From contig NW_003314327.1 in assembly GCF_000143415.4 (NCBI RefSeq), forward strand, positions 857,403 to 921,402: a stretch of 64,000 nt of DNA, read 5' to 3'. The notes beneath the pieces were generated by a model. That model did no database searches. It had not been told where the DNA came from and saw nothing but the letters and a program-made list of their open reading frames with translations. This DNA is from Selaginella moellendorffii (taxonomy: Eukaryota > Plantae > Lycopodiophyta). Shown here in pieces: positions 8,322 to 48,939 of this stretch; the first letter of the stretch is position 1, and each line of letters starts with the position of its first letter. The position numbers were made by a program, and so were the translations under genes.

Positions 8322-11300
8322 TCTATACATATAAAGCGATAGTGGGTAGGTTTGCTGGCCGTTGGATCCCAGGCCCGGGCCAGGGTCGGTAGCCATGGTT
8401 GCGCGAGAAATTTTTCTGATGTTTGCTCCCGGCCAATGGGAGGCGGCCAAGCTGCGTGGGGCGGGAGAAGAAGGCACAGCGACACGTGTGCCAGTGGTGT
8501 CCTGCCCCCATGCCCGTTCTTCTTAGCTCGCCCTGGATGCCCTGCCGCAATTGAGCTAACGCTTGCTTGCTGGATCAGTGGCAATCGCAGCAATTGCGCT
8601 TCTTCCTGCAAAGGTCTGTGTTCACCATCAGCCCGGCAGCCGCTAATTTGGCCCCCAACCCCAACAATCTGGATTTTTGTGTGCTGTGAAAATTTGAAAT
8701 GTCTTCATTTGGGTTTGTGGATGCTATCTAGTGGCAGAGCTGAAGCCAGAGCCAGCCCTCACAGCCAGAACCATCAGAGAGTTTGCAATCGTTGTCCTTT
8801 TGCGAGAGAGAACAAGCCCAAGGTGGGTTCTCTAACTTGCAAACCCCACCCACCTCTCACAGTTGCTCACCACACCCTGGAAAAGGTGTGCCAGTCCTGT
8901 GTCTAGGTTTTATTGGTTGCTAGATTAGTCTCTTTTGTTTACAGATTAAGGTGTGTACAGATTGTGCTCTCATTGTATAGTCTTCGTTTTTATTTTTTTT
9001 TAATTTTTTTTCCAGTGTAAGAAGAAGGCAAGTTCTGGCTTTACTTAGAATCTCTGAAAATTTTAAGATAAGTGCTTTGACACTAGATAGGTTATTTCAT
9101 CTCATTTATCATCCCTAGCAAATATGCCTCGGCTTCGCGAAGTATTAAGAGGCATACGTCACCATTTGCCTCCAACTATTGACATTAGCACATATAATCA
9201 TATTCACAACAACCTTGCATATGGTAATGAAGAAACTAATCTAGACCTTGAACATGCTAATGCAAAAATTACTTCAAATCTTGACAATGCTAATACAAAC
9301 ATAGCATGCCGATGAAGGTCATACAAATATAAACCTTGAAAATGCTAATGAAACTAATACAAATACATGTAATCATCACAGTTATACTATCTATAAATTA
9401 GCACATCAAAAGAATTATAATGACCATACAATACAACTGTTTAATATTGGAAATATGTGTCTTTTGTGGTGCATTACATTTTGAAAATGAGTCAAAATCA
9501 ATGTGCTGCCAGAATGGAAAGGTTTCCCTTCCCCAGCTTTCATCTTTACCTACTATATTGCGTATGCTTTTTAATGAAAATAGAAACTCCAATTTTAAAA
9601 TTAACATAAGAAATTTCAACAGTGCTTTGGCTTTTGCATCAATGGGTGCTAATATTGATAATTTAAGTGGTAAAGGCCCATATTGCTTTAGAATACATGG
9701 TCAAATTTATCACAAAATTGTTTCAACATATCCTGCTGCTAACGTGCCACCATCATATGGACAACTTTACATGCTTGACGCTTCTGAGGCTACAAATATT
9801 AGAAAGCAAAACCCATTCAACACAAACTGTGATTCTAATTTATTATTACAATTAGATAACTTGCTAAGAATAATAAACCCGTATGCACAAGCTTTTCAAA
9901 TGATGTATAATCTTGAATCACAAGAACAACATTGCTCAATTTGCAATAGAACCCCAAAACGTGGTGTTTACATGATTGTTAGAAGTGAAAGTACTAATCT
10001 ACATCGTTATAATTTGCCACAGACTAATGATGTTGCTATTGTTTTCGCTATTGATGAGGGTGAGCCATCTTTTGACAGAGAAATATGCATACATCCATAT
10101 AACTCACAGCCAATAAAAATCTCTATTCTTAATGAAAATTGTGATCCTATGGTTTATCCTTTACTTTTACCATTTGGTGATAAAGGTTGGCATGAAAAAA
10201 TCTATCACAATGAGTCGCATGTAACGTTACTCCAGTACTATGCATATCGATTATCTCAACGAGATAGCATTGGCAACTCTTTCCTTTATGATCAATTGCT
10301 ACATGCTGGGAAACTCACTCAACAATTTATAATTGATGCTTATGTAAAGGTTGAATCTAACAACCTTAATTTCTTTCGCACTCATCAAAAACACTTAAAA
10401 GTGGATTACTATACAGGTTTTATGGACTATGTTAGCAACAGAGCTGCTACTAATAATGTTGAACCTGGAAAAATTGTAATTTTGCCTTCTACATTTCCTG
10501 GTAGCCCACGAGCAATGCAACAACATTATCAAAATGCTATTGCTATTATCACACATTTTGGAAAACCTGACTTATTTATTACATTTACATGCAACCCAAA
10601 GTGGCCTGAAATTGTGCAAAACTTATAGCTGAATGAATCACCTGAGGATCAACTTGATCTTATTTCAAGAGTTTTCAACTTAAAACTTAAAGAATTCCTA
10701 CATGACATAAGTATCAAAGGAATTTTTGGGAAGTGCATCGCATATGTTTATGTTATTGAATTCCAGAAAAGAGGTTTGCCTCATTGTCATTTCTTAGCAA
10801 TGTTATCAAGCGAAGATAAGATAAGAAATCGAGACTCAGTTGATGAATTTGTCACTACACAGTTGCCACACCCACTGTTAGAACCAGAATTGCATAACAT
10901 AATTATAAATCATATGATACATGGTCCATGTGGTAATTTAAATCCTAGAAGCCCTTGCATGGAAAATAACAAATGCTCTAAGAATTATCCAAAAGAATTT
11001 AATGTTGAAACCATTTATTGTGTTGATGGTTATCCTGATTACTACCGTCCCAATAACAGGCGCACTTTCATAAAAAATGGTTGTACTATTGACAACAGAT
11101 GGGTTGTTCCTTATAATAAATACCTTTGTAAGAAATATCAAGCACACATCAATGTAGAGATTTGCGCTTCTATTAAAAGTATTAAATATTTATTTCAATA
11201 TGTATACAAAGGTTATGACTGTGCAACATTAGAATTCCTAACTGCATCTGAAGAACGAGGGACTTTAAATTGGGACGAAATCTCAAGTTTTGTCGATGCT

Positions 11301-13924
11301 CAATATATTTCTGCTCCTGAAGCCATGTGGCGTATATTTAAATTTCATATGCATGATAAATCACTAACTATTATACGCCTTCTAGTTCATTTACCCAATT
11401 TTCAAAACATTTATTTCAGACCAGGTCATGAACAAGAAGCACTAGAAAGAGCCACTCAAAATGGAACAATGCTTACACAATGGTTCAATTTAAACATGCA
11501 AAATACTAATGTAAGGCAATATACATATGCTCAAATTCCATTACATTACACATATAACAAATCCTCTCATAAATGGCAATTACACCAGCAAAAAGCTAAA
11601 CTCATACCAAGAATGTATTCCATATCTCCTTCTAATAGTGAGTTATACCACTTACGGCTTATATTACTCTATAAAAAAGGTGCTATATCATTTGAGGATG
11701 TATGTACTGTCGAAGGTGTTACTTTCTCTTCTTTCAAACAAGCAGTTATGGCAATGGGACTTTTAGCAGATGATTTAGAATGGCAACACTGCATGCAAGA
11801 AGCTTCTACTTTTAAAATGCCATCCCAATTAAGACAGTTATTTGTTTTTATTTGTTTGTATTGTTCACCAAAAGATCCAAATCTATTATGGGATCAATTC
11901 AAAATTGATATGTCTAAGGATTATGCTAGAAATGACATAAACTATTTTGACATTGCTTTAGTCGATATTAATTCAAAATTCCAACTACACAATAAATCTA
12001 ATTGTGATTTTGGTTTACCACTCCCAACTCTTACTCCCATTATCAAACACATGCTTAATATAGAGATCCCTGACCCATCACAAGAGCAAATAAATGCAAA
12101 TATAAATCAATTCAGTTATGAACAACGTTATATTTTTGAACTCATTATAAATGCCATTGATACTAACCATGTTTCTTTATTGATGGACCTGGTGGTACTG
12201 GAAAAACTTTTCTACTTAATACCATCATTATAGTATTACAATTAAAAAAAATAAAAGTAATCAGTATGGCATGGACTGGGATTGCAAGCATTTTGCTAAA
12301 ATATGGCCAACGGCACATATGACTTTTAAACTTCCTGTTCCTTTAAATGAAACTTCTGTCTCTGCTTTAACAATTAATAGTGATGCTGGAAAAACCATCA
12401 AACAAGCAAATGTTCTCATATGGGATGAAATTAGTATGGTTCATACACATGCTTTCTCTGTGGTTGATAAATGTTTAAAACATCTCAAATGTAATTCTAA
12501 ACCATTTGGAGGCGTTATAGTGATTACAAGTGGTGACTTTCATCAAACCCTTCATGTTGTTCCCCATGGCCATAGAACCTCTATTATTTCAAGCTCAGTT
12601 AAAATGAATAGACTATGGTCACTCTTTACAATACTAACATTAACAAAGAACATGCGTTCAAGCAATTTTTGTTTTTCTGAATGGCTTCTCAAACTTGGCA
12701 ATGGTGATAGTAGTTTACAGCTGCCATGTCTCCCACCAGATATTATCAAAATACCACATGCATTATCTATCACTACATCTGTTGTAAACTTTGTTTTCCC
12801 AAATACCGATGATATTATAAATACTCATACAGCTGCATCAAAGGTTATTCTCACCCCACTCAATGATGACACATTCAGAATAAATAATGACATTGTTGAA
12901 AGACTACCAGGTGATCCATATGTTTATTTGAGCATTGACATGGTTGACTCAGATCACCTTGAAGAGTTCCCAATTGAATTCTTAAATTCAATCACCCCAT
13001 CGGGACTACCACCACACAAATTAATTCTAAAACAAAATGTGATTTTGATTCTTCTTAGGAACATATCTCCACAAATTGGTTTATGCAATGGCACTCGCCT
13101 CATTCTCAAGCAAGCATCTCAAAACGTTTTAGATTGTGAAATTATCACGGGACAATTCAAGAGATCGCGAGTTTTTATTCCACGTATTACCCTTACACCT
13201 TCTGATGTTGAAATCCCTTTCAAGATGTCTCGAAGACAATTCCTAGTTCGTCTAGGTTATTGCTTAACTATTTCTAAAGCCCAAGGCCAAACTTTCGACC
13301 GTGTTGGCATTTACCTCCCCCAACCTGTTTTCACACATGGTCAACTTTATGTTGCTCTGTCAAGGTGTAGATCACCTGAACAACTTCGTGTTCAAGTGCT
13401 TGCAACCCCCCTTCAAGGCAATCTTATACCACATGATCAACACTTTTACACTGTGAATACAGTCTATGCTAAAATTCTTAAGTAGACTGGCAAAAAAATG
13501 GCACAATTCACCACAACAAAGTTGGCATTGACAAGTGTGCCTTGGGTGCTATCCCATTTTGGTTATGGCAAGTGCTATTTAGTTGCTAATGGCAGAGGTA
13601 CAGTTTTCATCCTATTGCTTTTTGAGTGTAGCTCTTAGGTTCCTAGCTCATCCCAGGAACCTCTCTAGCAGGCTGAGGAGCAAGTACCAACACTTGCACC
13701 AAAGATGGATTTGGAAGTATTCTTTGGGCTTTTTGTGTTCAAAATGGAGGAATGCAACTCAACAGTTATCTAATCTAGCTTATATAATGCTCATAACACA
13801 TTTGGTCATGAGAATGTCTTTCAATTGTGGAGTCGATCAGACAGCAAACATAGTTAAGCTCAGAAAACCTCTTCAAATGGCATCAAATTTGCCAACCACC
13901 CAGCATTTGCTGGGCAATTGCTAG
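8322..13924 (+). mobile_element. Helitron, formerly autonomous and now defective
   Basis: 5' TCTATACATATAAAG; 3' hairpin CCCAGCA-TT-TGCTGGG (13899-13914) then CTAG|T; internal Rep/helicase coding region. Confidence 0.93.
9124..13485 (+). pseudogene. Helitron RepHel (HUH Rep endonuclease + PIF1 helicase), disrupted
   Basis: GKPDLFITFTCNPKWPEI, IEFQKRGLPHCH, MIHGPCG, DNRWVVPYN, KYLFQYVYKG, GPGGTGKTF, IWDEISM, GLCNGTRL, TISKAQGQT, HGQLYVALSR; in-frame stops (9313, 10626) and frameshifts around 12170-12310. Confidence 0.95.
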
Positions 13925-41010: not shown

Positions 41011-42199
41011 CCATAGATTAGTATCAAATGAATAACCCAGTTATAAAATATTTATATCTATTTTTAGAAATCTATTATTTTTATAATTTCATGTTTTGAT
41101 ATTGTATATATAAAATATACAAATATGGCTAGGATAATCAACCTGTATTTATAACTTCGTAATCCTACTTTATCCCTCTCATTATGTTTTAAGATTTTTA
41201 GAACATAAATATATTAAGATCTTAGTTCCCATTAATAAACTATTTGTTTGAATAGTAAGTATACTAAGTAAAAATAATTACAGATAATATAAATATTTTA
41301 ATGTAAACTTACCTGATTCAAAAATTATTATTATGAATAACAATTACTATAAATAAATATATAGTCTGGAAATATTATAATGAATAAAAACATAATATTA
41401 TGTCCCAAGTTCAAGCAAAGAACATTACCCAATCCTCTGTATACAAAATCCTAGATTGCAAGCAAAAGAGTTATATCGGGAGTTGTAACTAACAAACTTA
41501 TAAATATATTGCATTCAATTAGTAATATACACATATATATAATGTGTTCTTAGGTAGCTTTAAATGATACCTGTCTACTTATTTGCAAGATAACTGCATA
41601 TAAATAGTACATTAGTCAGTGTCTTCATATATAAGAAGTAGACAAAAAATTTGTGGTTTAAATGCTTGATAGATCTTCAAGAAACTAAATATAACACCAT
41701 GCAAAGAGTGACCCAAGGTATTTGCTTCCTTTTCTTCTGTGCTTTTTTTTTCTTATTTTTATTTATTATTTAATTTTTATGGCTAAATGCAGTTTTTTTT
41801 GTTTTTATAATGTAAAGCAATTATACTAACTTCTTTTTTTGTGACTTCTTTATGTTGCTGTAATTTTGTAACCATGTTATATTGGCCACGCTTTCATCAT
41901 TCCACATTGGCTGCTATGCGGCAGGAATCCCAGCGGGACACTGGCTAGCACGAGAAAGGCCAAATGCTTCGTTTGCGCAGTTTTGGAGCACAGAAGAACT
42001 CGCTGCTTTTTTGCGATGGTCGTCACTGTTCCATGGCAAGATGGCGGGGAGATGGCGGGTTGTGCATGGCGAGAGGGCCCTCGCGTCCAAGTTCCTAGCT
42101 GGAGACATTCCCGGTCGAGATCGCCAGTTGCAAGAACTCATGGGGGCTCGAAGAGCATCTGGCGGAGACGCTGGGCCGATCACCTGATGCTTCGAGCGG

Positions 42200-42310
42200 A
42201 ATCCAGCAGCTGGATTGCAAGGTATAGCAGCATATGCCCAGAATGGGTATTTCTCCTTGCGTGCCCAGATGCCGGAGTACACGTGGCTCATTGTGGGCCG
42301 TTGAAAGGGC
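42200..42310 (+). pseudogene. Possible PPR-gene remnant
   Basis: One frame reads IAAYAQNGY...QMPE, typical of PLS-class PPR motifs; very short. Confidence 0.3.
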
Positions 42311-42595
42311 TTCATGGAGTTTGAATATATAGCTTGGGGGGAGTTTGCTGGGAGCGCTGGGGAGCGCGCTAGGGCTTCATCGGTGAGCATTTAGCACAGC
42401 GGCCGCCGCGGCTCGCAGGATCGAGCGAGTCTATGAAAGAATTGCCGTCTAAGCGCGTGACAAGGTATGTAGTCCCTCTTCGCCTTTCCTTCCCTTTGAA
42501 AGCTACGGAGTTTGAGCGCCCGAGTTTCTTCTTGATGATGCCAATTTAACTATCGATGGTGGCTGCTACAGAGTTTGCCAAGCGAGGAATCCACG

Positions 42596-43700
42596 ATGTC
42601 TAAGTGCTGCGATAAGGTAATCCTGGTAGTCCCTTTTCCTTGCTTTCCTATGAGCTTTCTCATCTCTATCCTGTGTGATTTAGATGAATGTCGACTTCAG
42701 CATGGAGAATGAACCATGGTGGAGAAATGTGGTTGCAGAGATGAATGATATCAAGTTCCCGATCAACCAAGAGAAAACAAGCGAGCAGATGGTAGCTGTG
42801 CTAGCAGGTTGTATTGGGCGTGACAAATTCGCATCCAAAACGGCATTCGAGGAGGCACTCCTCAGAGGCAGAATAACGGAGAATGATATAGCGGAGATTC
42901 ACAGAGCGTTGAACGTGACAGACTTGGACATGGATGAAGAGCTTGGAGAATACCGCACACAGATGGTTTGTACCATTAAACTGGAACTCTCTCAAGGCCA
43001 ACTCCGGAAGAAGGAACAACTCCCCTATCTTCATCCAAGTTTGGTGCGGCAAAGAATGGTATCATTTGTGGACTCCTTCAACCATGCTCTCAACAGCTTG
43101 AACCTGGTAAGAGCATACTTTGTTTTCATTTTAGTTTGTTTGGTCTTTTTTATTCTTTGTTTCTTTTCTTGAAGGAATTGAAGGCTTCTTCCCCGGAACT
43201 AAGAGTTTCTGCTGCTATCAAGCTTGCTGCTGCTGTAGCAAAGGAGTTTCTTGAGATTCATCCTTTTGTTGATGGAAATGGGAGAGTGTCTCGCGTGATG
43301 ATGGCAGGCATTATGTTCCATGCTCTCGGTATTCACTTCACCATACCAAGGTAATGTATTATCTCAATATTCACCTTGGTATTCATCCAGTTGTTTTTTC
43401 AGCGGCCTGTTTTTCGGCTGGTTATTGCAAAAGAGTCAAGTGAGGAGGACTCCACCGTATGAAGTGGCAACATTCATGCTGGATAAGTTCTATGAGCAGG
43501 TTAGTAGTGAATTGTTACGGTGAATGGATTCCAACTGTTCTTCAGGTGACTAGTGGATTCTGCCAGCAATAGCACACCTTGACCAAGGACCTGCAGCATC
43601 AAGATCATCCGTAAGTTTGGATCACACTCACCTTAGAGTAGTTTTACTTTAGCTTGCTGAGACACAGTAGCATGTAAGTGTAATTTCTTTAACCAGGTAG
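42596..43700 (+). CDS. Spliced Fic/Fido-domain protein with a canonical catalytic motif (both ends uncertain)
   Basis: DIAEIHRAL..GEYRT; FLEIHPFVDGNGRVSRVMM; GT-AG introns at ~42617-42683, 43106-43173, 43351-43390 and 43500-43546. Confidence 0.85.
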
Positions 43701-43744
43701 CAGTGGATTTTTTACACGGACATCTTGTGATGGCATTGATGGTG

Positions 43745-43860
43745 TTCCACAGCCAAACTCTTGCAACAGATCGAGGCCGTGCGTCCCAAGGTGTTGGAGG
43801 TAGGTGCAGCTCTCGGAATTCCTAGACCTGTGTGCGTCTCCGCGAGTGTTTACGGTGGAG
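43745..43860 (+). pseudogene. Remnant paralog of the second Fic gene's 5' region
   Basis: CCAAACTCTTGCAACAGATCGAGGCCGTGC..GGAATTC.TAGACCTGTGTG matches 44752-44875, with a ~23 bp deletion. Confidence 0.7.
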
Positions 43861-44639
43861 CTCAGAAACGTTGCTTAATGCTAGGTGAGTTCCTCCAGGT
43901 CGATGCAAGGTTGATTGCAACGCCCTTTACCAAAGGATTAGGCCTTGAAAAGTGTAAGCGTCTGCTTTGTTCTCATGTTTCAGCCATCCCATCTTGCATT
44001 GTTTCACAGTCAACGTTGTAACTCAACGAGGATTTGTCCAACGAATGCAAGTGTTATTTATCCTTTGACGAGTTCTATAAACTTTTTACGTGTTAGGCAC
44101 CTCATTTTGTATTGCATCGGCGATGCAAATGGAAAACTGATGCTTGCTCACGCCGCCAGTGCCCAGAGCATTCAGGTGAGTGTGGGAATGTCGAAATGTT
44201 TTCGTGTGATTGTCGCTTGTCGCTGGAAACGATAATGCTCTAAAGTATACCAGCATTTTTTTGGGCTCGGATTCCCACGCTGCGAGTCCCTTCCTGCTTC
44301 CAAGCCAGAGAAGCTGTGCAAGACTTCGAGCAAAGGAATTGATCATCGATTCTGCTTGGCATGCCAAGATCTGGCATCTCAATCACAAAGGCCACAATTC
44401 TCTTCAGGCGGATCCACTTGGAAGCTCAAAGTAGTCGATACCAAATAAACCCTTAGACGAAGCAGTGAACAATTAAAATATTTGGGGGTCCTTAGATTAT
44501 ATACACTAAAAGGACTATCCTTTTTACCCCCAGTGGGAAAAGACAAAACGCCCTAAATTGGACGGCTAAGATCGCAAGCTAATCCCAGCCGTCGGATTTT
44601 TCGCGAATCTACCTTTGAAGATGCTGCCATTGCCCTTAC

Positions 44640-45554
44640 GTGTATAGGGTTAGATCCCTAGAACATCTTATGGAGTGGGCGACAGAGCTGCCTGGATGGC
44701 ATCGGCGGGGATGCAAAAGAGCGTGGGCGTATGTTCCAGAGGTAGGCACCTCCAAACTCTTGCAACAGATCGAGGCCGTGCATCCCAAGCTGTCGGAGGT
44801 CCCTGAGCCTACCCTTGGAAAGCAGATGCAGCTCTTGGAATTCTTAGACCTGTGTGTGGCTCCGCGAGCGTTCACGCTGGAGCCAGGCGCCACCAGGGCC
44901 AGGATGCTACGATTAAATTACGACCCCAGGGAAGGTCCCCTTGCCATCCCTGCCGGCCTGGTTGCTGCTGCAGATTACATGGATATGAGGCAAGAAAAGG
45001 GAGACATCATCAGCCTGGAGGATGTTGTCAAGGTGCACAAGCTTGTGATGATGAATCACGGTGGTGGTGAAGAAGCGGAAGCTGAGAGTGATGCCTTGGG
45101 CAAGTATATTGATGAGCTCCACGCCAAGCTGGGAGCTTTGGAGAATGATCCGAGCCTCAGTTGGCAGCAGCGTGCCCAGCGCCTGATAACAATCGCTGCA
45201 GAGACTTTGTTGTGGTTTTTCGGCCACAGGCCATTCAAAGACGGCAACGCAAGGGTGGCAGAGGTGGTGTGCGTGTGGCTCTTGGAAAGCTTGGCACCTT
45301 GTGTGCCATTTAGCATCAATCTGTGGCTTGCACTAGATGAGGGAAAGATTGGTAGTTTAGTTGGGTGCCAGAAGCAGCAGACGCATAAGAATTGCTCATT
45401 CATACCATTACCATCAGGCATAGAAGATACATCAGCATATATTGTGGAGAGGTTGTGGGTCGCTTGGAATAATGTGCTTCGTTTTGATTCTGGACCAGTT
45501 GAAGATGAGAATCCCTTTGAAAGTTTCTCAAAGTTACGTGGTACTTTTAAATAG
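44640..45554 (+). CDS. Intronless Fic/Fido-domain protein with a non-canonical motif (likely ATG at 44669)
   Basis: ISLEDVVKVHKLVM; AAETLLWFFGHRPFKDGNARVAE; 304 aa uninterrupted ORF. Confidence 0.75.
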   Translation: MYRVRSLEHLMEWATELPGWHRRGCKRAWAYVPEVGTSKLLQQIEAVHPKLSEVPEPTLGKQMQLLEFLDLCVAPRAFTLEPGATRARMLRLNYDPREGPLAIPAGLVAAADYMDMRQEKGDIISLEDVVKVHKLVMMNHGGGEEAEAESDALGKYIDELHAKLGALENDPSLSWQQRAQRLITIAAETLLWFFGHRPFKDGNARVAEVVCVWLLESLAPCVPFSINLWLALDEGKIGSLVGCQKQQTHKNCSFIPLPSGIEDTSAYIVERLWVAWNNVLRFDSGPVEDENPFESFSKLRGTFK

Positions 45555-45582
45555 TTTGTCATTTCAAAATTATATAGTTTTA

Positions 45583-45896
45583 CAAAAAGAAAAAAAGTAA
45601 TTCTATAAATTAAGATTGGAGAAATTAGTGTTTTTTTAATTTAGAAGAAATAAATTAAATAAATTTTATTCTCTATGTCTATATCATTAAAATTTATATT
45701 TAATTAATAGTCAAAATTATTTATTTATACTGCCACCATTAGGCATAAAGGATAACAAAAGAAAAAAAGTAAAGTTATAAATTAAGATTGGAGAGATTAG
45801 TGCTTTTAGTTGCACTAAATAATTTAGAAGAAATAAATTAAATAAATTTTATTCTCTATGTCTATGTCATTAAAATTTATATTTAATTAATAGTCT
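45583..45896. repeat. Local tandem duplication (~130-180 bp units)
   Basis: AAAAGAAAAAAAGTAA..TAAATTAAGATTGGAGA.ATTAGTG..TTCTCTATGTCTAT.TCATTAAAATTTATATTTAATTAATAGTC occurs twice. Confidence 0.85.
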
Positions 45897-46594
45897 GGCA
45901 TTATCAGGGATGAGTATTGTCAATAGGTTGTATGCTCTCAAGGTAAAAATAATCTATAGAGATTAAGATTGATCTGAAATAACACCTTATTTTGATTGTT
46001 GAAAATAACAATTCCTAAAAGAGTTTCCAAAAGTTATATGATTTATTAAATCATTTTTCTTTTTCATTATTATATAGTTTACAAAATAAAATTAAAAAAT
46101 TAAATTATTTTAAAAAATTTCATTGATTCTTGTGCTGTTGTTACAAAATTAAAGTAAATATTTTTGAACTAGATAGTTTATTATCTAAAATATAAAAAAC
46201 TGAAAAATAAATAAATCTTTTACTCAATCTTGGCATTTTGATTACTAAATAGTTTTACATTAAAATACTTTTAATTTCATAAAAACCTAAAATTAAAAAT
46301 AAAACTAAAATAGTATGTATAAAAAGCTAAAACACTTTATTATTTGTAATTGTGATGTTTATACAAATATTGCTAGAATAGTCTTAGACTCATCTTAAGA
46401 CAACTTTTCATTATGAGTGTTGATAATCCTAGTTTATCCCTCTTGAATTTATAATATATTACTATTAATATAGATTATAAATAACTTTGAAACACAAAGA
46501 TATGAAGAAAAACAATTATATAAATACTGAATAGGTATATTAATTGAGGATACAAATTTAGCCCCAAATGATGGTCCTTAAGCCTAACAAGGGT

Positions 46595-46679
46595 AATATA
46601 CATACTTACATACATACATACATGTGTATATATGTATATATACACACACACACACAGATATATATATATACATATATAC

Positions 46680-46716
<37 letters not shown>

Positions 46717-47180
46717 CATATATATATATATATATACATATATATATACATATATATACATATATATATATATACATATATATACATACATATATATACA
46801 TATATATATATATATACATATATATACATACATATATATATATATATACATACATATATATACATATATATATATATATACATATATACATATATATACA
46901 TATATACATATACATATACACATACACATATACATACATATACACATATACATACATATATACATATACATATATATGTATATATACATGTATATATGTA
47001 CATACATATATATATATAAATATATATACAAATGTATACTCACGTATGTATATGTATGTATATATGTGTATATGTATATGTATATATGTATGTATATATA
47101 TGTATATGTGTATGTATATATTTGTATATATATGTGTATACATATGTATATGTATATGTATGTGTATATATGTATATATA
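46595..47180. repeat. Compound (TA)n/(TACA)n/(TATG)n microsatellite
   Basis: About 590 bp of almost purely alternating purine-pyrimidine sequence. Confidence 0.95.
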
Positions 47181-48939
47181 GCTATTGAAAATTCCTTTTT
47201 TAATACTTCTTTATCTACTTTTTTTCTACAATTTAAACAATGAGAGTGTTTCTAAACATTTTTTTCCTTCAATGAGAAGATAAAGAAGATATAGAAGATG
47301 AATGAAATGAGTCTGCTCTCATATATAATATATGGGACAGTTACATAGAAAGTTAGTTGGTTCATTAAAATTTCATAGTTGATTTATGCTTTTGTTATGG
47401 CTTTATGTTCTATTTATATCATTGTTGTCAAAAGTTACATTGACAATTTCATGAAATTTATAGCAATCTATAATCTATAACCAAAAGCTCTAGATATTCC
47501 ATTTAACCAATATTTTCATCTTTTGGAGTGAAAGATTGTGTGTGTGTGTCTATATATATATATAGACACACAATGTTTATATTCCTTTCACAAATGGTCT
47601 TGCTTTTTTCCGTCCACAAGAGTGACTCTAATCTTGTACACAGAAATATATATATATATATATATAAAAGCATTTTCCATCCTCCTTATAGTAATCTAGA
47701 TATTAGATGTGTATTCATGAAATCGAGAATATTGCTTTTATTTCATTTGTAGAGTCTTGATTGTTTATAGTATTGAGTATCCTTATATTCTTTTTTCTAA
47801 GGATTGAGTCACTTTCACTAGATTTTTGAGTTAAGCACATTTTCCATAATGTAAGTGTTAAATGTTAGAGCATTGAGATTTTAACAAAACCAATATATTA
47901 CTACTTGCACACAGACAAAAGAAAATACTTAATTACTAATTATTATTATTGTTAACACAGCAGAAAACCCTAAAATTTTAAGAACATTAATTTCCTTATA
48001 CTTTCACCTAATTTCTAGGTTCATCCAAAAGCTATACAAATATCAAGCTGCAAATAAAGAGGTATACCTAAACTTTTGTGTATTCAATCCTAAATTGCAA
48101 GTACCTCCAAGCCTTCTTGTGAGCAAAATTAATGACTTTCTAAATCTTGTACTAAATTAGTAAAATAGCATATCAATGCTATCATATGTAAATTTAAATA
48201 TTATTTCAACTATCTATTTATTTGCTAGAATGTCTTTTGTAATACTTAATTCATCTATAAAGTATAACTTAATTATTTTACTTAATTAACATAGTAAGTT
48301 AATTACATACTTAAGTGCTAAATATAAATATATATTACTATTATCTCCATATCTCTCTATTACCAACTCATTCATTGTCCCATTTAATTCCAAAACTTAT
48401 TTTTCACCAAGTTAATTTATTTGAAGCCATGTTAGAATAAGTTATATTGCAATACTGAAGCATTTCAAGCATTGTCAAACTTCAGCAAATTTGAGTGCTA
48501 ATGCCCCTTGTTGATGCATGTAAACAGCTGCACACATATATATACATGCAGACGATAATATTTGAAGAATATTCATTAAGTTTAATATTTTATAAGTTTA
48601 AGTTAAGAATAATTTTAGGTTTTTACTAAGCATAAATAGTAAGTAGACCTATTTTAACTGATATCTATACAGTGACGTGAGTAGCGGTATTTCTGGTTTA
48701 AAGCTGATATGTTTGATGTCATCAAATATCTGGTGACATCAATCTGCGCTTCTTGGAAAAAAGAAGCGCTGATTTCACCCGTAAAGGTGAGCGTGCCAGA
48801 GTGGTTATCGAGCATGACTATGGGCTCTGCCCGCGCAGGTCCGAATCCTGCCGCTCACCAAATCCTTCTAGATAAGAATGTGTTATTCTAAAATTGCTGG
48901 ATTGATTCACTTAAATTTTGGCTGATGCACATGAGGCAT

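Follow-up and report, generated by a model that had tools for sequence, protein, structure and literature searches.

In FICD (HYPE, Fic-1), the metazoan class II enzyme that AMPylates and deAMPylates BiP, and in bacterial Fic proteins, an inhibitory glutamate acts as a brake that must be mutated before activity is seen; its loss (E234 in FICD) gives constitutive AMPylation and does away with deAMPylation. In bacterial class I pairs such as VbhT/VbhA and EcFicT/EcFicA, the Fic enzyme is without an inhibitory helix of its own and lies beside a second gene, the small protein product of which provides SxxxEG in trans. The Fic/Fido fold also occurs with a degenerate HxFxDGNGRxxR motif in AvrB and the Bartonella Bep proteins, which are secreted bacterial effectors, and without a flap in the Doc kinases, where the motif reads HxFx(D/N)(A/G)NKR. 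According to reviews of AMPylation, plants and fungi have no Fic proteins (PMC12409994, PMC4854385), as an earlier note on the DNA studied here had held for angiosperms. In 2015, Khater and Mohanty had already grouped Fic proteins from Dictyostelium, plants and fungi in one clade (PMC4454073, supplement). Here, we describe two adjacent Fic-fold genes, gene 1 and gene 2, in 64,000 nucleotides of the lycophyte Selaginella moellendorffii (contig NW_003314327.1, positions 857,403 to 921,402, forward strand). This whole stretch is referred to as the window, and positions are counted from its first letter.

The locus holds two bona fide, transcribed Fic-fold genes in a vascular plant, at odds with the textbook view of plants as devoid of Fic enzymes. 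With moderate confidence, we read the pair as very diverged, expressed FICD-like members of the family, gene 1 being a predicted competent transferase without autoinhibition and gene 2 a functional pseudoenzyme. Gene 1 would then act as a soluble, catalytically competent nucleotidyl transferase, with AMP as the likeliest group, that is free of glutamate autoinhibition. Gene 2 would serve in binding or as a scaffold, and its partners may, but need not, include gene 1 or the targets of gene 1.

Gene 1 could become the first Fic enzyme of a plant to undergo biochemical testing, and it may by nature lack the glutamate brake found in FICD and bacterial Fic proteins. Gene 2 clearly exemplifies a Fic pseudoenzyme that selection has preserved, to our knowledge a little-studied class. 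The novelty of the pair is limited, as both genes are already database entries annotated as Fido/Fic-domain proteins (the UniProt label of both is “Fido domain-containing”, uncharacterised) and plant Fic proteins are mentioned in the 2015 in silico survey (PMC4454073, supplement). A literature search for papers dedicated to plant, lycophyte or fern Fic proteins found none.

Gene 1: transcripts, fold and active site

Transcript evidence was taken from contigs of four public runs belonging to four studies, in which joined forms without introns indicate that the runs derive from RNA. The coding sequence of gene 1 (42596-43572, + strand) consists of five exons and encodes 247 aa. Its four coding introns (42617-42683, 43107-43174, 43351-43402 and 43500-43545) are skipped in contigs of the four runs, a 107-nt intron in the 5' untranslated region (UTR; 42465-42571) is spliced in three runs and retained in one, and an alternative 3'UTR intron (43674-43752) is skipped in one run. 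In exon structure, the model built from the contigs matches the RefSeq LOC9646299 protein, from which it differs at six residues. The complete Fic motif and the at least four short introns that the earlier note had read in gene 1 thus both stand, the motif HPFVDGNGRVSR being located in the third coding exon and the contigs of the four studies confirming every intron as GT..AG. The parts of gene 1 are as follows.

42000-42464, + strand: first 5'UTR exon (contig pieces 42000-42462 joined to 42572 in three runs)
42572-42616, + strand: start-codon exon, with the ATG at 42596 and 7 codons (joints 42462>42570 and 42614>42682)
42684-43106, + strand: coding exon 2, residues 8-148, with the conserved His80 helix and the beta-hairpin flap
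42969-43025, + strand: flap, residues 103-121 (AlphaFold strands E103-110 and E113-121)
43175-43350, + strand: coding exon 3, with the Fic motif inside (Pfam Fic E 3.4e-10)
43259-43294, + strand: Fic motif HPFVDGNGRVSR, from His177 to Arg188 (motif scan)
43403-43499, + strand: coding exon 4 (joints in four runs)
43546-43572, + strand: last coding exon, with the stop codon TAG at 43570-43572

The transcript starts upstream of 42000, contigs extending ~90-105 nt beyond this position, and the 3'UTR reaches at least 43692 and, in one run, 44036. The 5'UTR (~41900-42595) is GC-rich and unusually long (>550 nt), and it contains many strain indels at ~42040-42135 and 42261 as well as an out-of-frame upstream open reading frame (ORF) from 42433.

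Both proteins score above the gathering cut-off of 24 bits for Pfam Fic (PF02661), which upholds the family assignment of the earlier note. For full-length gene 1 the match has an E-value of 1.5e-13 (51.8 bits), and no other Pfam domain was found in it. All residues of HxFx(D/E)GNGRxxR are present (H177, F179, D181, G182, N183, G184, R185 and R188), and the invariant upstream histidine is kept as H80. The AlphaFold model (pLDDT 77, pTM 0.74) contains a long beta hairpin, with strands 103-110 and 113-121 at pLDDT 84-87, in the position of the target-registering flap. Its structural alignment with FICD covers residues 261-433 of the latter (Z 14.2, root-mean-square deviation 2.7-2.8 over 168 residues, 24% identity). 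Scores against the class I Fic toxins (Z ~11.6-11.9) and AvrB (Z ~10) are lower, and FICD is the best match by both structure and profile. A profile of gene 1 and 44 of its matches finds FICD in the PDB over the whole domain at E 2.8e-47, which places the gene 1 group in the FICD-like branch; by sequence, only the motif region is detectable, at E ~3e-4.

Gene 1 shares with FICD an identical HPFxDGNGRxxR motif, the conserved upstream histidine helix and the flap hairpin. Unlike FICD, it has neither a transmembrane segment, a tetratricopeptide repeat domain nor a TVAIEG-type inhibitory helix; the search for an anchor or repeats in its 247 aa found none, with a maximum hydropathy of 1.37 and no hydrophobic segment. 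Gene 1 is not a FICD ortholog. NCBIfam TIGR01550 (DOC_P1) matches gene 1 only, at 16.6 bits and below its cut-off of 38.65, and PADLOC returns a generic Fic similarity for gene 1 (SoFic, E 1e-10), no match for gene 2 and no link of either to a known defence system.

A regular expression for (S/T)xxxE(G/N) finds no match in the gene 1 and gene 2 proteins, in agreement with the earlier note, which had seen no canonical autoinhibitory motif in either. Nor does the pattern occur in any plausible ORF of 41500-46500, the only matches in this interval being two antisense ones, one spanning a stop codon, with none on the transcribed strand. In FICD and most relatives, an SSNxIE-type segment lies ~60 residues ahead of the helix that corresponds to the H80 helix. 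The family hidden Markov model (HMM) aligns to gene 1 from position 50 on, downstream of the inhibitory segment, and the alignment shows a gap in gene 1 where most relatives carry SSNxIE. Gene 1 has ~38 low-confidence residues to cover ~82 residues of FICD, and its confident model starts at FICD residue 261. As judged from this alignment, gene 1 is without the ~50 N-terminal residues that bear the inhibitory SxxxE helix of its relatives and of FICD. DeAMPylation by FICD needs the glutamate of the inhibitory helix, so the bifunctional switch of FICD is not expected in gene 1. Given the missing segment and the effect of losing the glutamate in FICD and bacterial Fic proteins, gene 1 is probably an active, non-autoinhibited nucleotidyl transferase, which would most likely transfer AMP.

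Several points weigh against this view of gene 1. A canonical motif is no proof of AMPylation; in other Fic proteins, related motifs go with the transfer of UMP or phosphocholine or with phosphorylation. The first ~55 residues of the model have a pLDDT below 55 and include the glutamates E17, E26, E37 and E63/64, and in such a poorly modelled part an N-terminal glutamate could still block the active site. Any selective constraint on gene 1 would have to be judged from a single allelic pair (six nonsynonymous and three synonymous differences between the window and the reference allele), and the depth of contigs says little about how strongly a gene is expressed.

The nine allelic differences of gene 1 are confined to 42684-43130 (codons 59-149), the flap included, and the rest of its coding sequence is identical. 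Diversifying selection was considered for the six replacements, which fall in codons 92-145, but was not retained because the three synonymous differences lie in the same stretch (codons 59-149).

Gene 2 and its solitary paralog

Gene 2 lies 1,097 bp downstream of gene 1 on the same strand, and contigs of all four runs cover it unspliced from 44658 to ~45532. Within 45303-45460, two allelic forms are visible in the contigs. This agrees with the earlier note, which had described an intronless gene ~1 kb downstream on the same strand, with HRPFKDGNARVAE as a motif in which arginine stands for the catalytic histidine, a glycine is changed to alanine and the last arginine to glutamate. The following features were located.

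44670-45554, + strand: gene 2, a single-exon ORF of 294 aa, pseudo-Fic
45225-45263, + strand: degenerate Fic motif HRPFKDGNARVAE of gene 2 (profile alignment and motif scan)
43748-43861, + strand: degenerate copy of gene 2 residues 27-71, 114 nt, in the gene 1 3'UTR (tblastn)

The protein consists of ~94 family-specific N-terminal residues and a Fic core at ~95-270, which matches Pfam Fic at E 1.5e-6 (29.4 bits). In an ungapped profile alignment, Arg187 takes the position of the catalytic histidine, Ala194 that of the second glycine and Glu198 that of the last arginine. His186, one residue upstream of R187, is replaced by arginine in the paralog described below and is thus not a conserved catalytic substitute. 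In the region of the flap, ~30 residues are absent relative to gene 1, and the model is all-helical without strands. The AlphaFold model, of moderate confidence overall (pLDDT 66, pTM 0.70), is confident in its core, residues 95-215. Among the 50 best Foldseek matches, nearly all belong to the Fic family, with Fic-1/FICD at the top at TM ~0.5, and a sequence search of the PDB with gene 2 gave no match. With the catalytic histidine, the anion-hole glycine, the phosphate-binding last arginine and the flap all lost, gene 2, on the evidence of its residues, cannot work as a Fic transferase. Its C-terminal tail, which is modelled at low confidence, contains the near-motif SGPVED.

Gene 2 resembles AvrB and the Bep proteins in combining the Fic/Fido fold with a degenerate motif. 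It differs from them in being encoded in a plant nucleus and in having lost the hairpin, which AvrB retains, and a comparison with AvrB and Bep found no sequence similarity beyond the family level. Like the Doc kinases it is without a flap, but it has arginine in place of their histidine and alanine in place of their lysine. Gene 1, without an inhibitory helix of its own and next to a second gene, recalls the class I pairs; the class I partner is a small protein that supplies the inhibitory motif, whereas gene 2 is a 294-aa Fic fold without this motif and occurs alone elsewhere in the genome.

A paralog of gene 2 with ~89% DNA identity is located on GL377636.1, and its other haplotype on GL377616.1. 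In both haplotypes the neighbours are a kinase gene, a pentatricopeptide repeat (PPR) gene, a gene of 578 aa, DUF7356 and Nup160. Gene 2-type ORFs are intact and full-length in all four copies (two loci in two haplotypes), those of the paralog encoding 304 aa (10001-10915 of the GL377636.1 segment L001) and 301 aa (~8385-9290 of the GL377616.1 segment L003). The reference models SELMODRAFT_425030 and SELMODRAFT_421411 are truncated or chimeric as a result of spurious introns and not of stop codons. Between the two loci, the ratio of nonsynonymous to synonymous substitution rates (dN/dS) is 0.23 at a dS of ~0.3 (bootstrap 95% confidence interval 0.15-0.35; maximum of 0.49 in 1000 resamples), and it is 0.21 in the Fic core alone. 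RPFKDGNAR and the final glutamate of the degenerate motif are identical in both paralog haplotypes, one of which has valine for Ala197. Intact ORFs, the low dN/dS and transcription together indicate a conserved pseudoenzyme and not a pseudogene; gene 2 is, as far as substitution patterns tell, under purifying selection at two loci and a functional pseudoenzyme.

Directly 3' of gene 2, at 45585-45900, an AT-rich unit occurs in two copies, 172-183 nt apart and 90-99% identical. The reference annotation uses this region as an intron, thereby altering the C-terminus of gene 2, and the contigs give no support for it.

Origin of the pair and rival explanations

Genes 1 and 2 are 27% identical over 64 residues. 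An hhalign comparison of gene 2 with the gene 1 family spans 155 columns across the whole Fic core (probability 97.6%, E 3e-12). The copy of gene 2 sequence in the gene 1 3'UTR forms direct repeats with 44747-44883, at 87-91% identity over the seeds, is also present in the reference haplotype (8911-9024 of the reference locus segment L002) and points to a shared duplication history. In a tree constrained to a clade of gene 1 and gene 2, the likelihood was 25.9 log units better than in the quick free search, and the approximately unbiased (AU) test did not reject this clade (p 0.875). The two genes are most simply old duplicates within the lineage that have strongly diverged, though their sister relation may also reflect long-branch attraction.

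The alternative 3'UTR intron of gene 1 ends exactly at the border of the gene 2 fragment. A resemblance of the upstream ORF start of gene 1 (MKELP) to the start of the gene 2 paralog (MEKELP) was also followed up and dropped, a comparison of the regions upstream of gene 1 and of the paralog having given nothing beyond the fragment at 43753-43861.

Word-based homolog searches returned only the Selaginella proteins themselves and two weak matches, and they say nothing about other plant species. When gene 1 was searched exhaustively with HMMER against 1.84 billion cluster representatives, only gene 1 itself scored below E 1e-10, no other match fell below E 1e-7 and no ortholog was found; the remaining 54 matches range from E 2e-7 to 1e-3. 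Twenty of these weak matches were looked up, and the six that carry organism names are all from eukaryotes, namely the Amoebozoa Heterostelium and Balamuthia, the chytrid Borealophlyctis and the fungi Chaetomium, Orbilia and Cristinia. One relative lies in a compact, bacterial-looking genomic context. The nearest named relatives are thus amoebozoan and fungal Fido proteins of the “E2” eukaryotic group (Khater and Mohanty 2015), such as Heterostelium PPL_00220, which are eukaryotic, FICD-like and soluble as is gene 1. Gene 1 differs from them in its sequence (20-30% identity), and most of them keep an SSNxIE-type segment and many are double-Fic proteins.

Tandem pairs of canonical Fic domains occur in six proteins of ~580-617 aa (amoebozoan, chytrid and others). 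First domains group in one supported clade and second domains in another, both clades excluding the two Selaginella genes, which marks the double-Fic arrangement as an old internal duplication. In a maximum-likelihood tree of 63 Fic domains, both Selaginella genes sit on long branches without a supported placement, and the tree lends no support to an origin by splitting of a double-Fic protein, to horizontal gene transfer or to any donor. The data agree with the clade of Khater and Mohanty and fit ancient eukaryotic descent with loss as well as transfer.

Our reading of the pair has to be weighed against a two-gene module in which gene 2, by binding gene 1 or the targets of gene 1, would hold the enzyme back or redirect it, in the manner of bacterial FicT/FicA or of dimer control in FICD. 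The genes are adjacent on one strand and transcribed in the same runs, gene 1 has lost the inhibitory segment, gene 2 is conserved though catalytically dead, its fragment within the gene 1 3'UTR implies a common history, and its low-confidence tail carries SGPVED. Gene 2 has no canonical SxxxE(G/N), however, and its ~89% paralog stands alone between the PPR gene and an unrelated gene in both haplotypes, where nothing resembling gene 1 lies within 8-10 kb. No gene 1 paralog that could partner this second copy was detectable by word-based or exhaustive HMMER searches. The solitary paralog shows that pairing is not obligate, and we consider such a module unlikely. The recurrent pairing expected by the earlier note is thus not seen for this gene type, and its suggestion of an enzyme with a regulator or decoy loses ground. 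A wider version, in which a de-inhibited AMPylase is checked or targeted by a dedicated pseudo-Fic as one unit of a large Selaginella Fic expansion in stress or immune signalling, we regard as quite unlikely; if true, eukaryotes would have, in a kingdom held to be Fic-free, their own equivalent of the bacterial Fic toxin-antitoxin systems.

The earlier note also proposed horizontal acquisition, and a recent bacterial transfer, by which a Fic toxin module entered Selaginella and then gained introns, would fit the mostly bacterial distribution of Fic proteins and their horizontal transfer, which has been called frequent (PMC4454073). Language-model look-alikes are likewise mostly bacterial or phage Fic clusters, and other plants are reported to be Fic-free (PMC12409994). 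The best outside match is nonetheless only at E 2e-7, so that no donor-like sequence exists among the representatives searched, the named matches in the set of 20 come from Amoebozoa and fungi and not from bacteria, and the family profile is closest to eukaryotic FICD. Gene 1 moreover has a long UTR and is interrupted by five to six spliceosomal introns, and the tree gives it no supported placement. These observations weaken the proposal, and we consider a recent bacterial origin very unlikely. The loss of three catalytic-motif residues and of the flap, and the truncated or chimeric reference models of the gene 2 paralog, would fit gene 2 as a pseudogene in decay, a dead Fic duplicate with incidental transcription. 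The truncation stems from spurious introns, the ORF is full-length in four of four copies, the upper bootstrap bound of dN/dS is 0.35, the degenerate motif is shared between the paralogs save for one Ala-to-Val change in one haplotype, and transcript contigs occur in four of four runs. The pseudogene explanation is largely refuted and seems highly improbable, and the reading of gene 2 as a functional pseudoenzyme beside a diverged, FICD-like gene 1 is preferred.

The surrounding sequence

Gene 1 corresponds to LOC9646299 (96% identity) and gene 2 to SELMODRAFT_410894 (97%), both of S. moellendorffii. The tandem pair is present with the same gene order on scaffold GL377578.1 of the reference assembly, to which the window is ~96% identical over gene 2 and ~91% identical, with indels, over gene 1 and its flanks. 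Together with a coding divergence of dS ~0.02, this indicates that the window represents, on sequence grounds, another haplotype or accession of the same species. Plant genes elsewhere in the window encode TORTIFOLIA1-like, Vps51/Exo84-like, C2H2 zinc finger and NIF phosphatase proteins. The locus is nuclear and of a land plant (lycophyte) and is not contamination, as the earlier note had concluded.

An inverted-repeat search around the pair returned only a TA-rich microsatellite, with no flanking cassette boundaries or transposon ends. Between 37407 and 39237, the four longest ORFs on the + strand have no Pfam match at E 0.01. The stretch at 46475-47243 is a TA/TACA-rich microsatellite of ~0.7 kb with a GC content of ~21%; it gives rise to long spurious ORFs on either strand and is rich in palindromic pairs. 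Further upstream, a Helitron occupies 9420-13485 (+ strand), with three consecutive long ORFs that form a largely intact Helitron transposase region; the first encodes a Helitron helicase-like N-terminal domain and the third PIF1 helicase and 2B domains.

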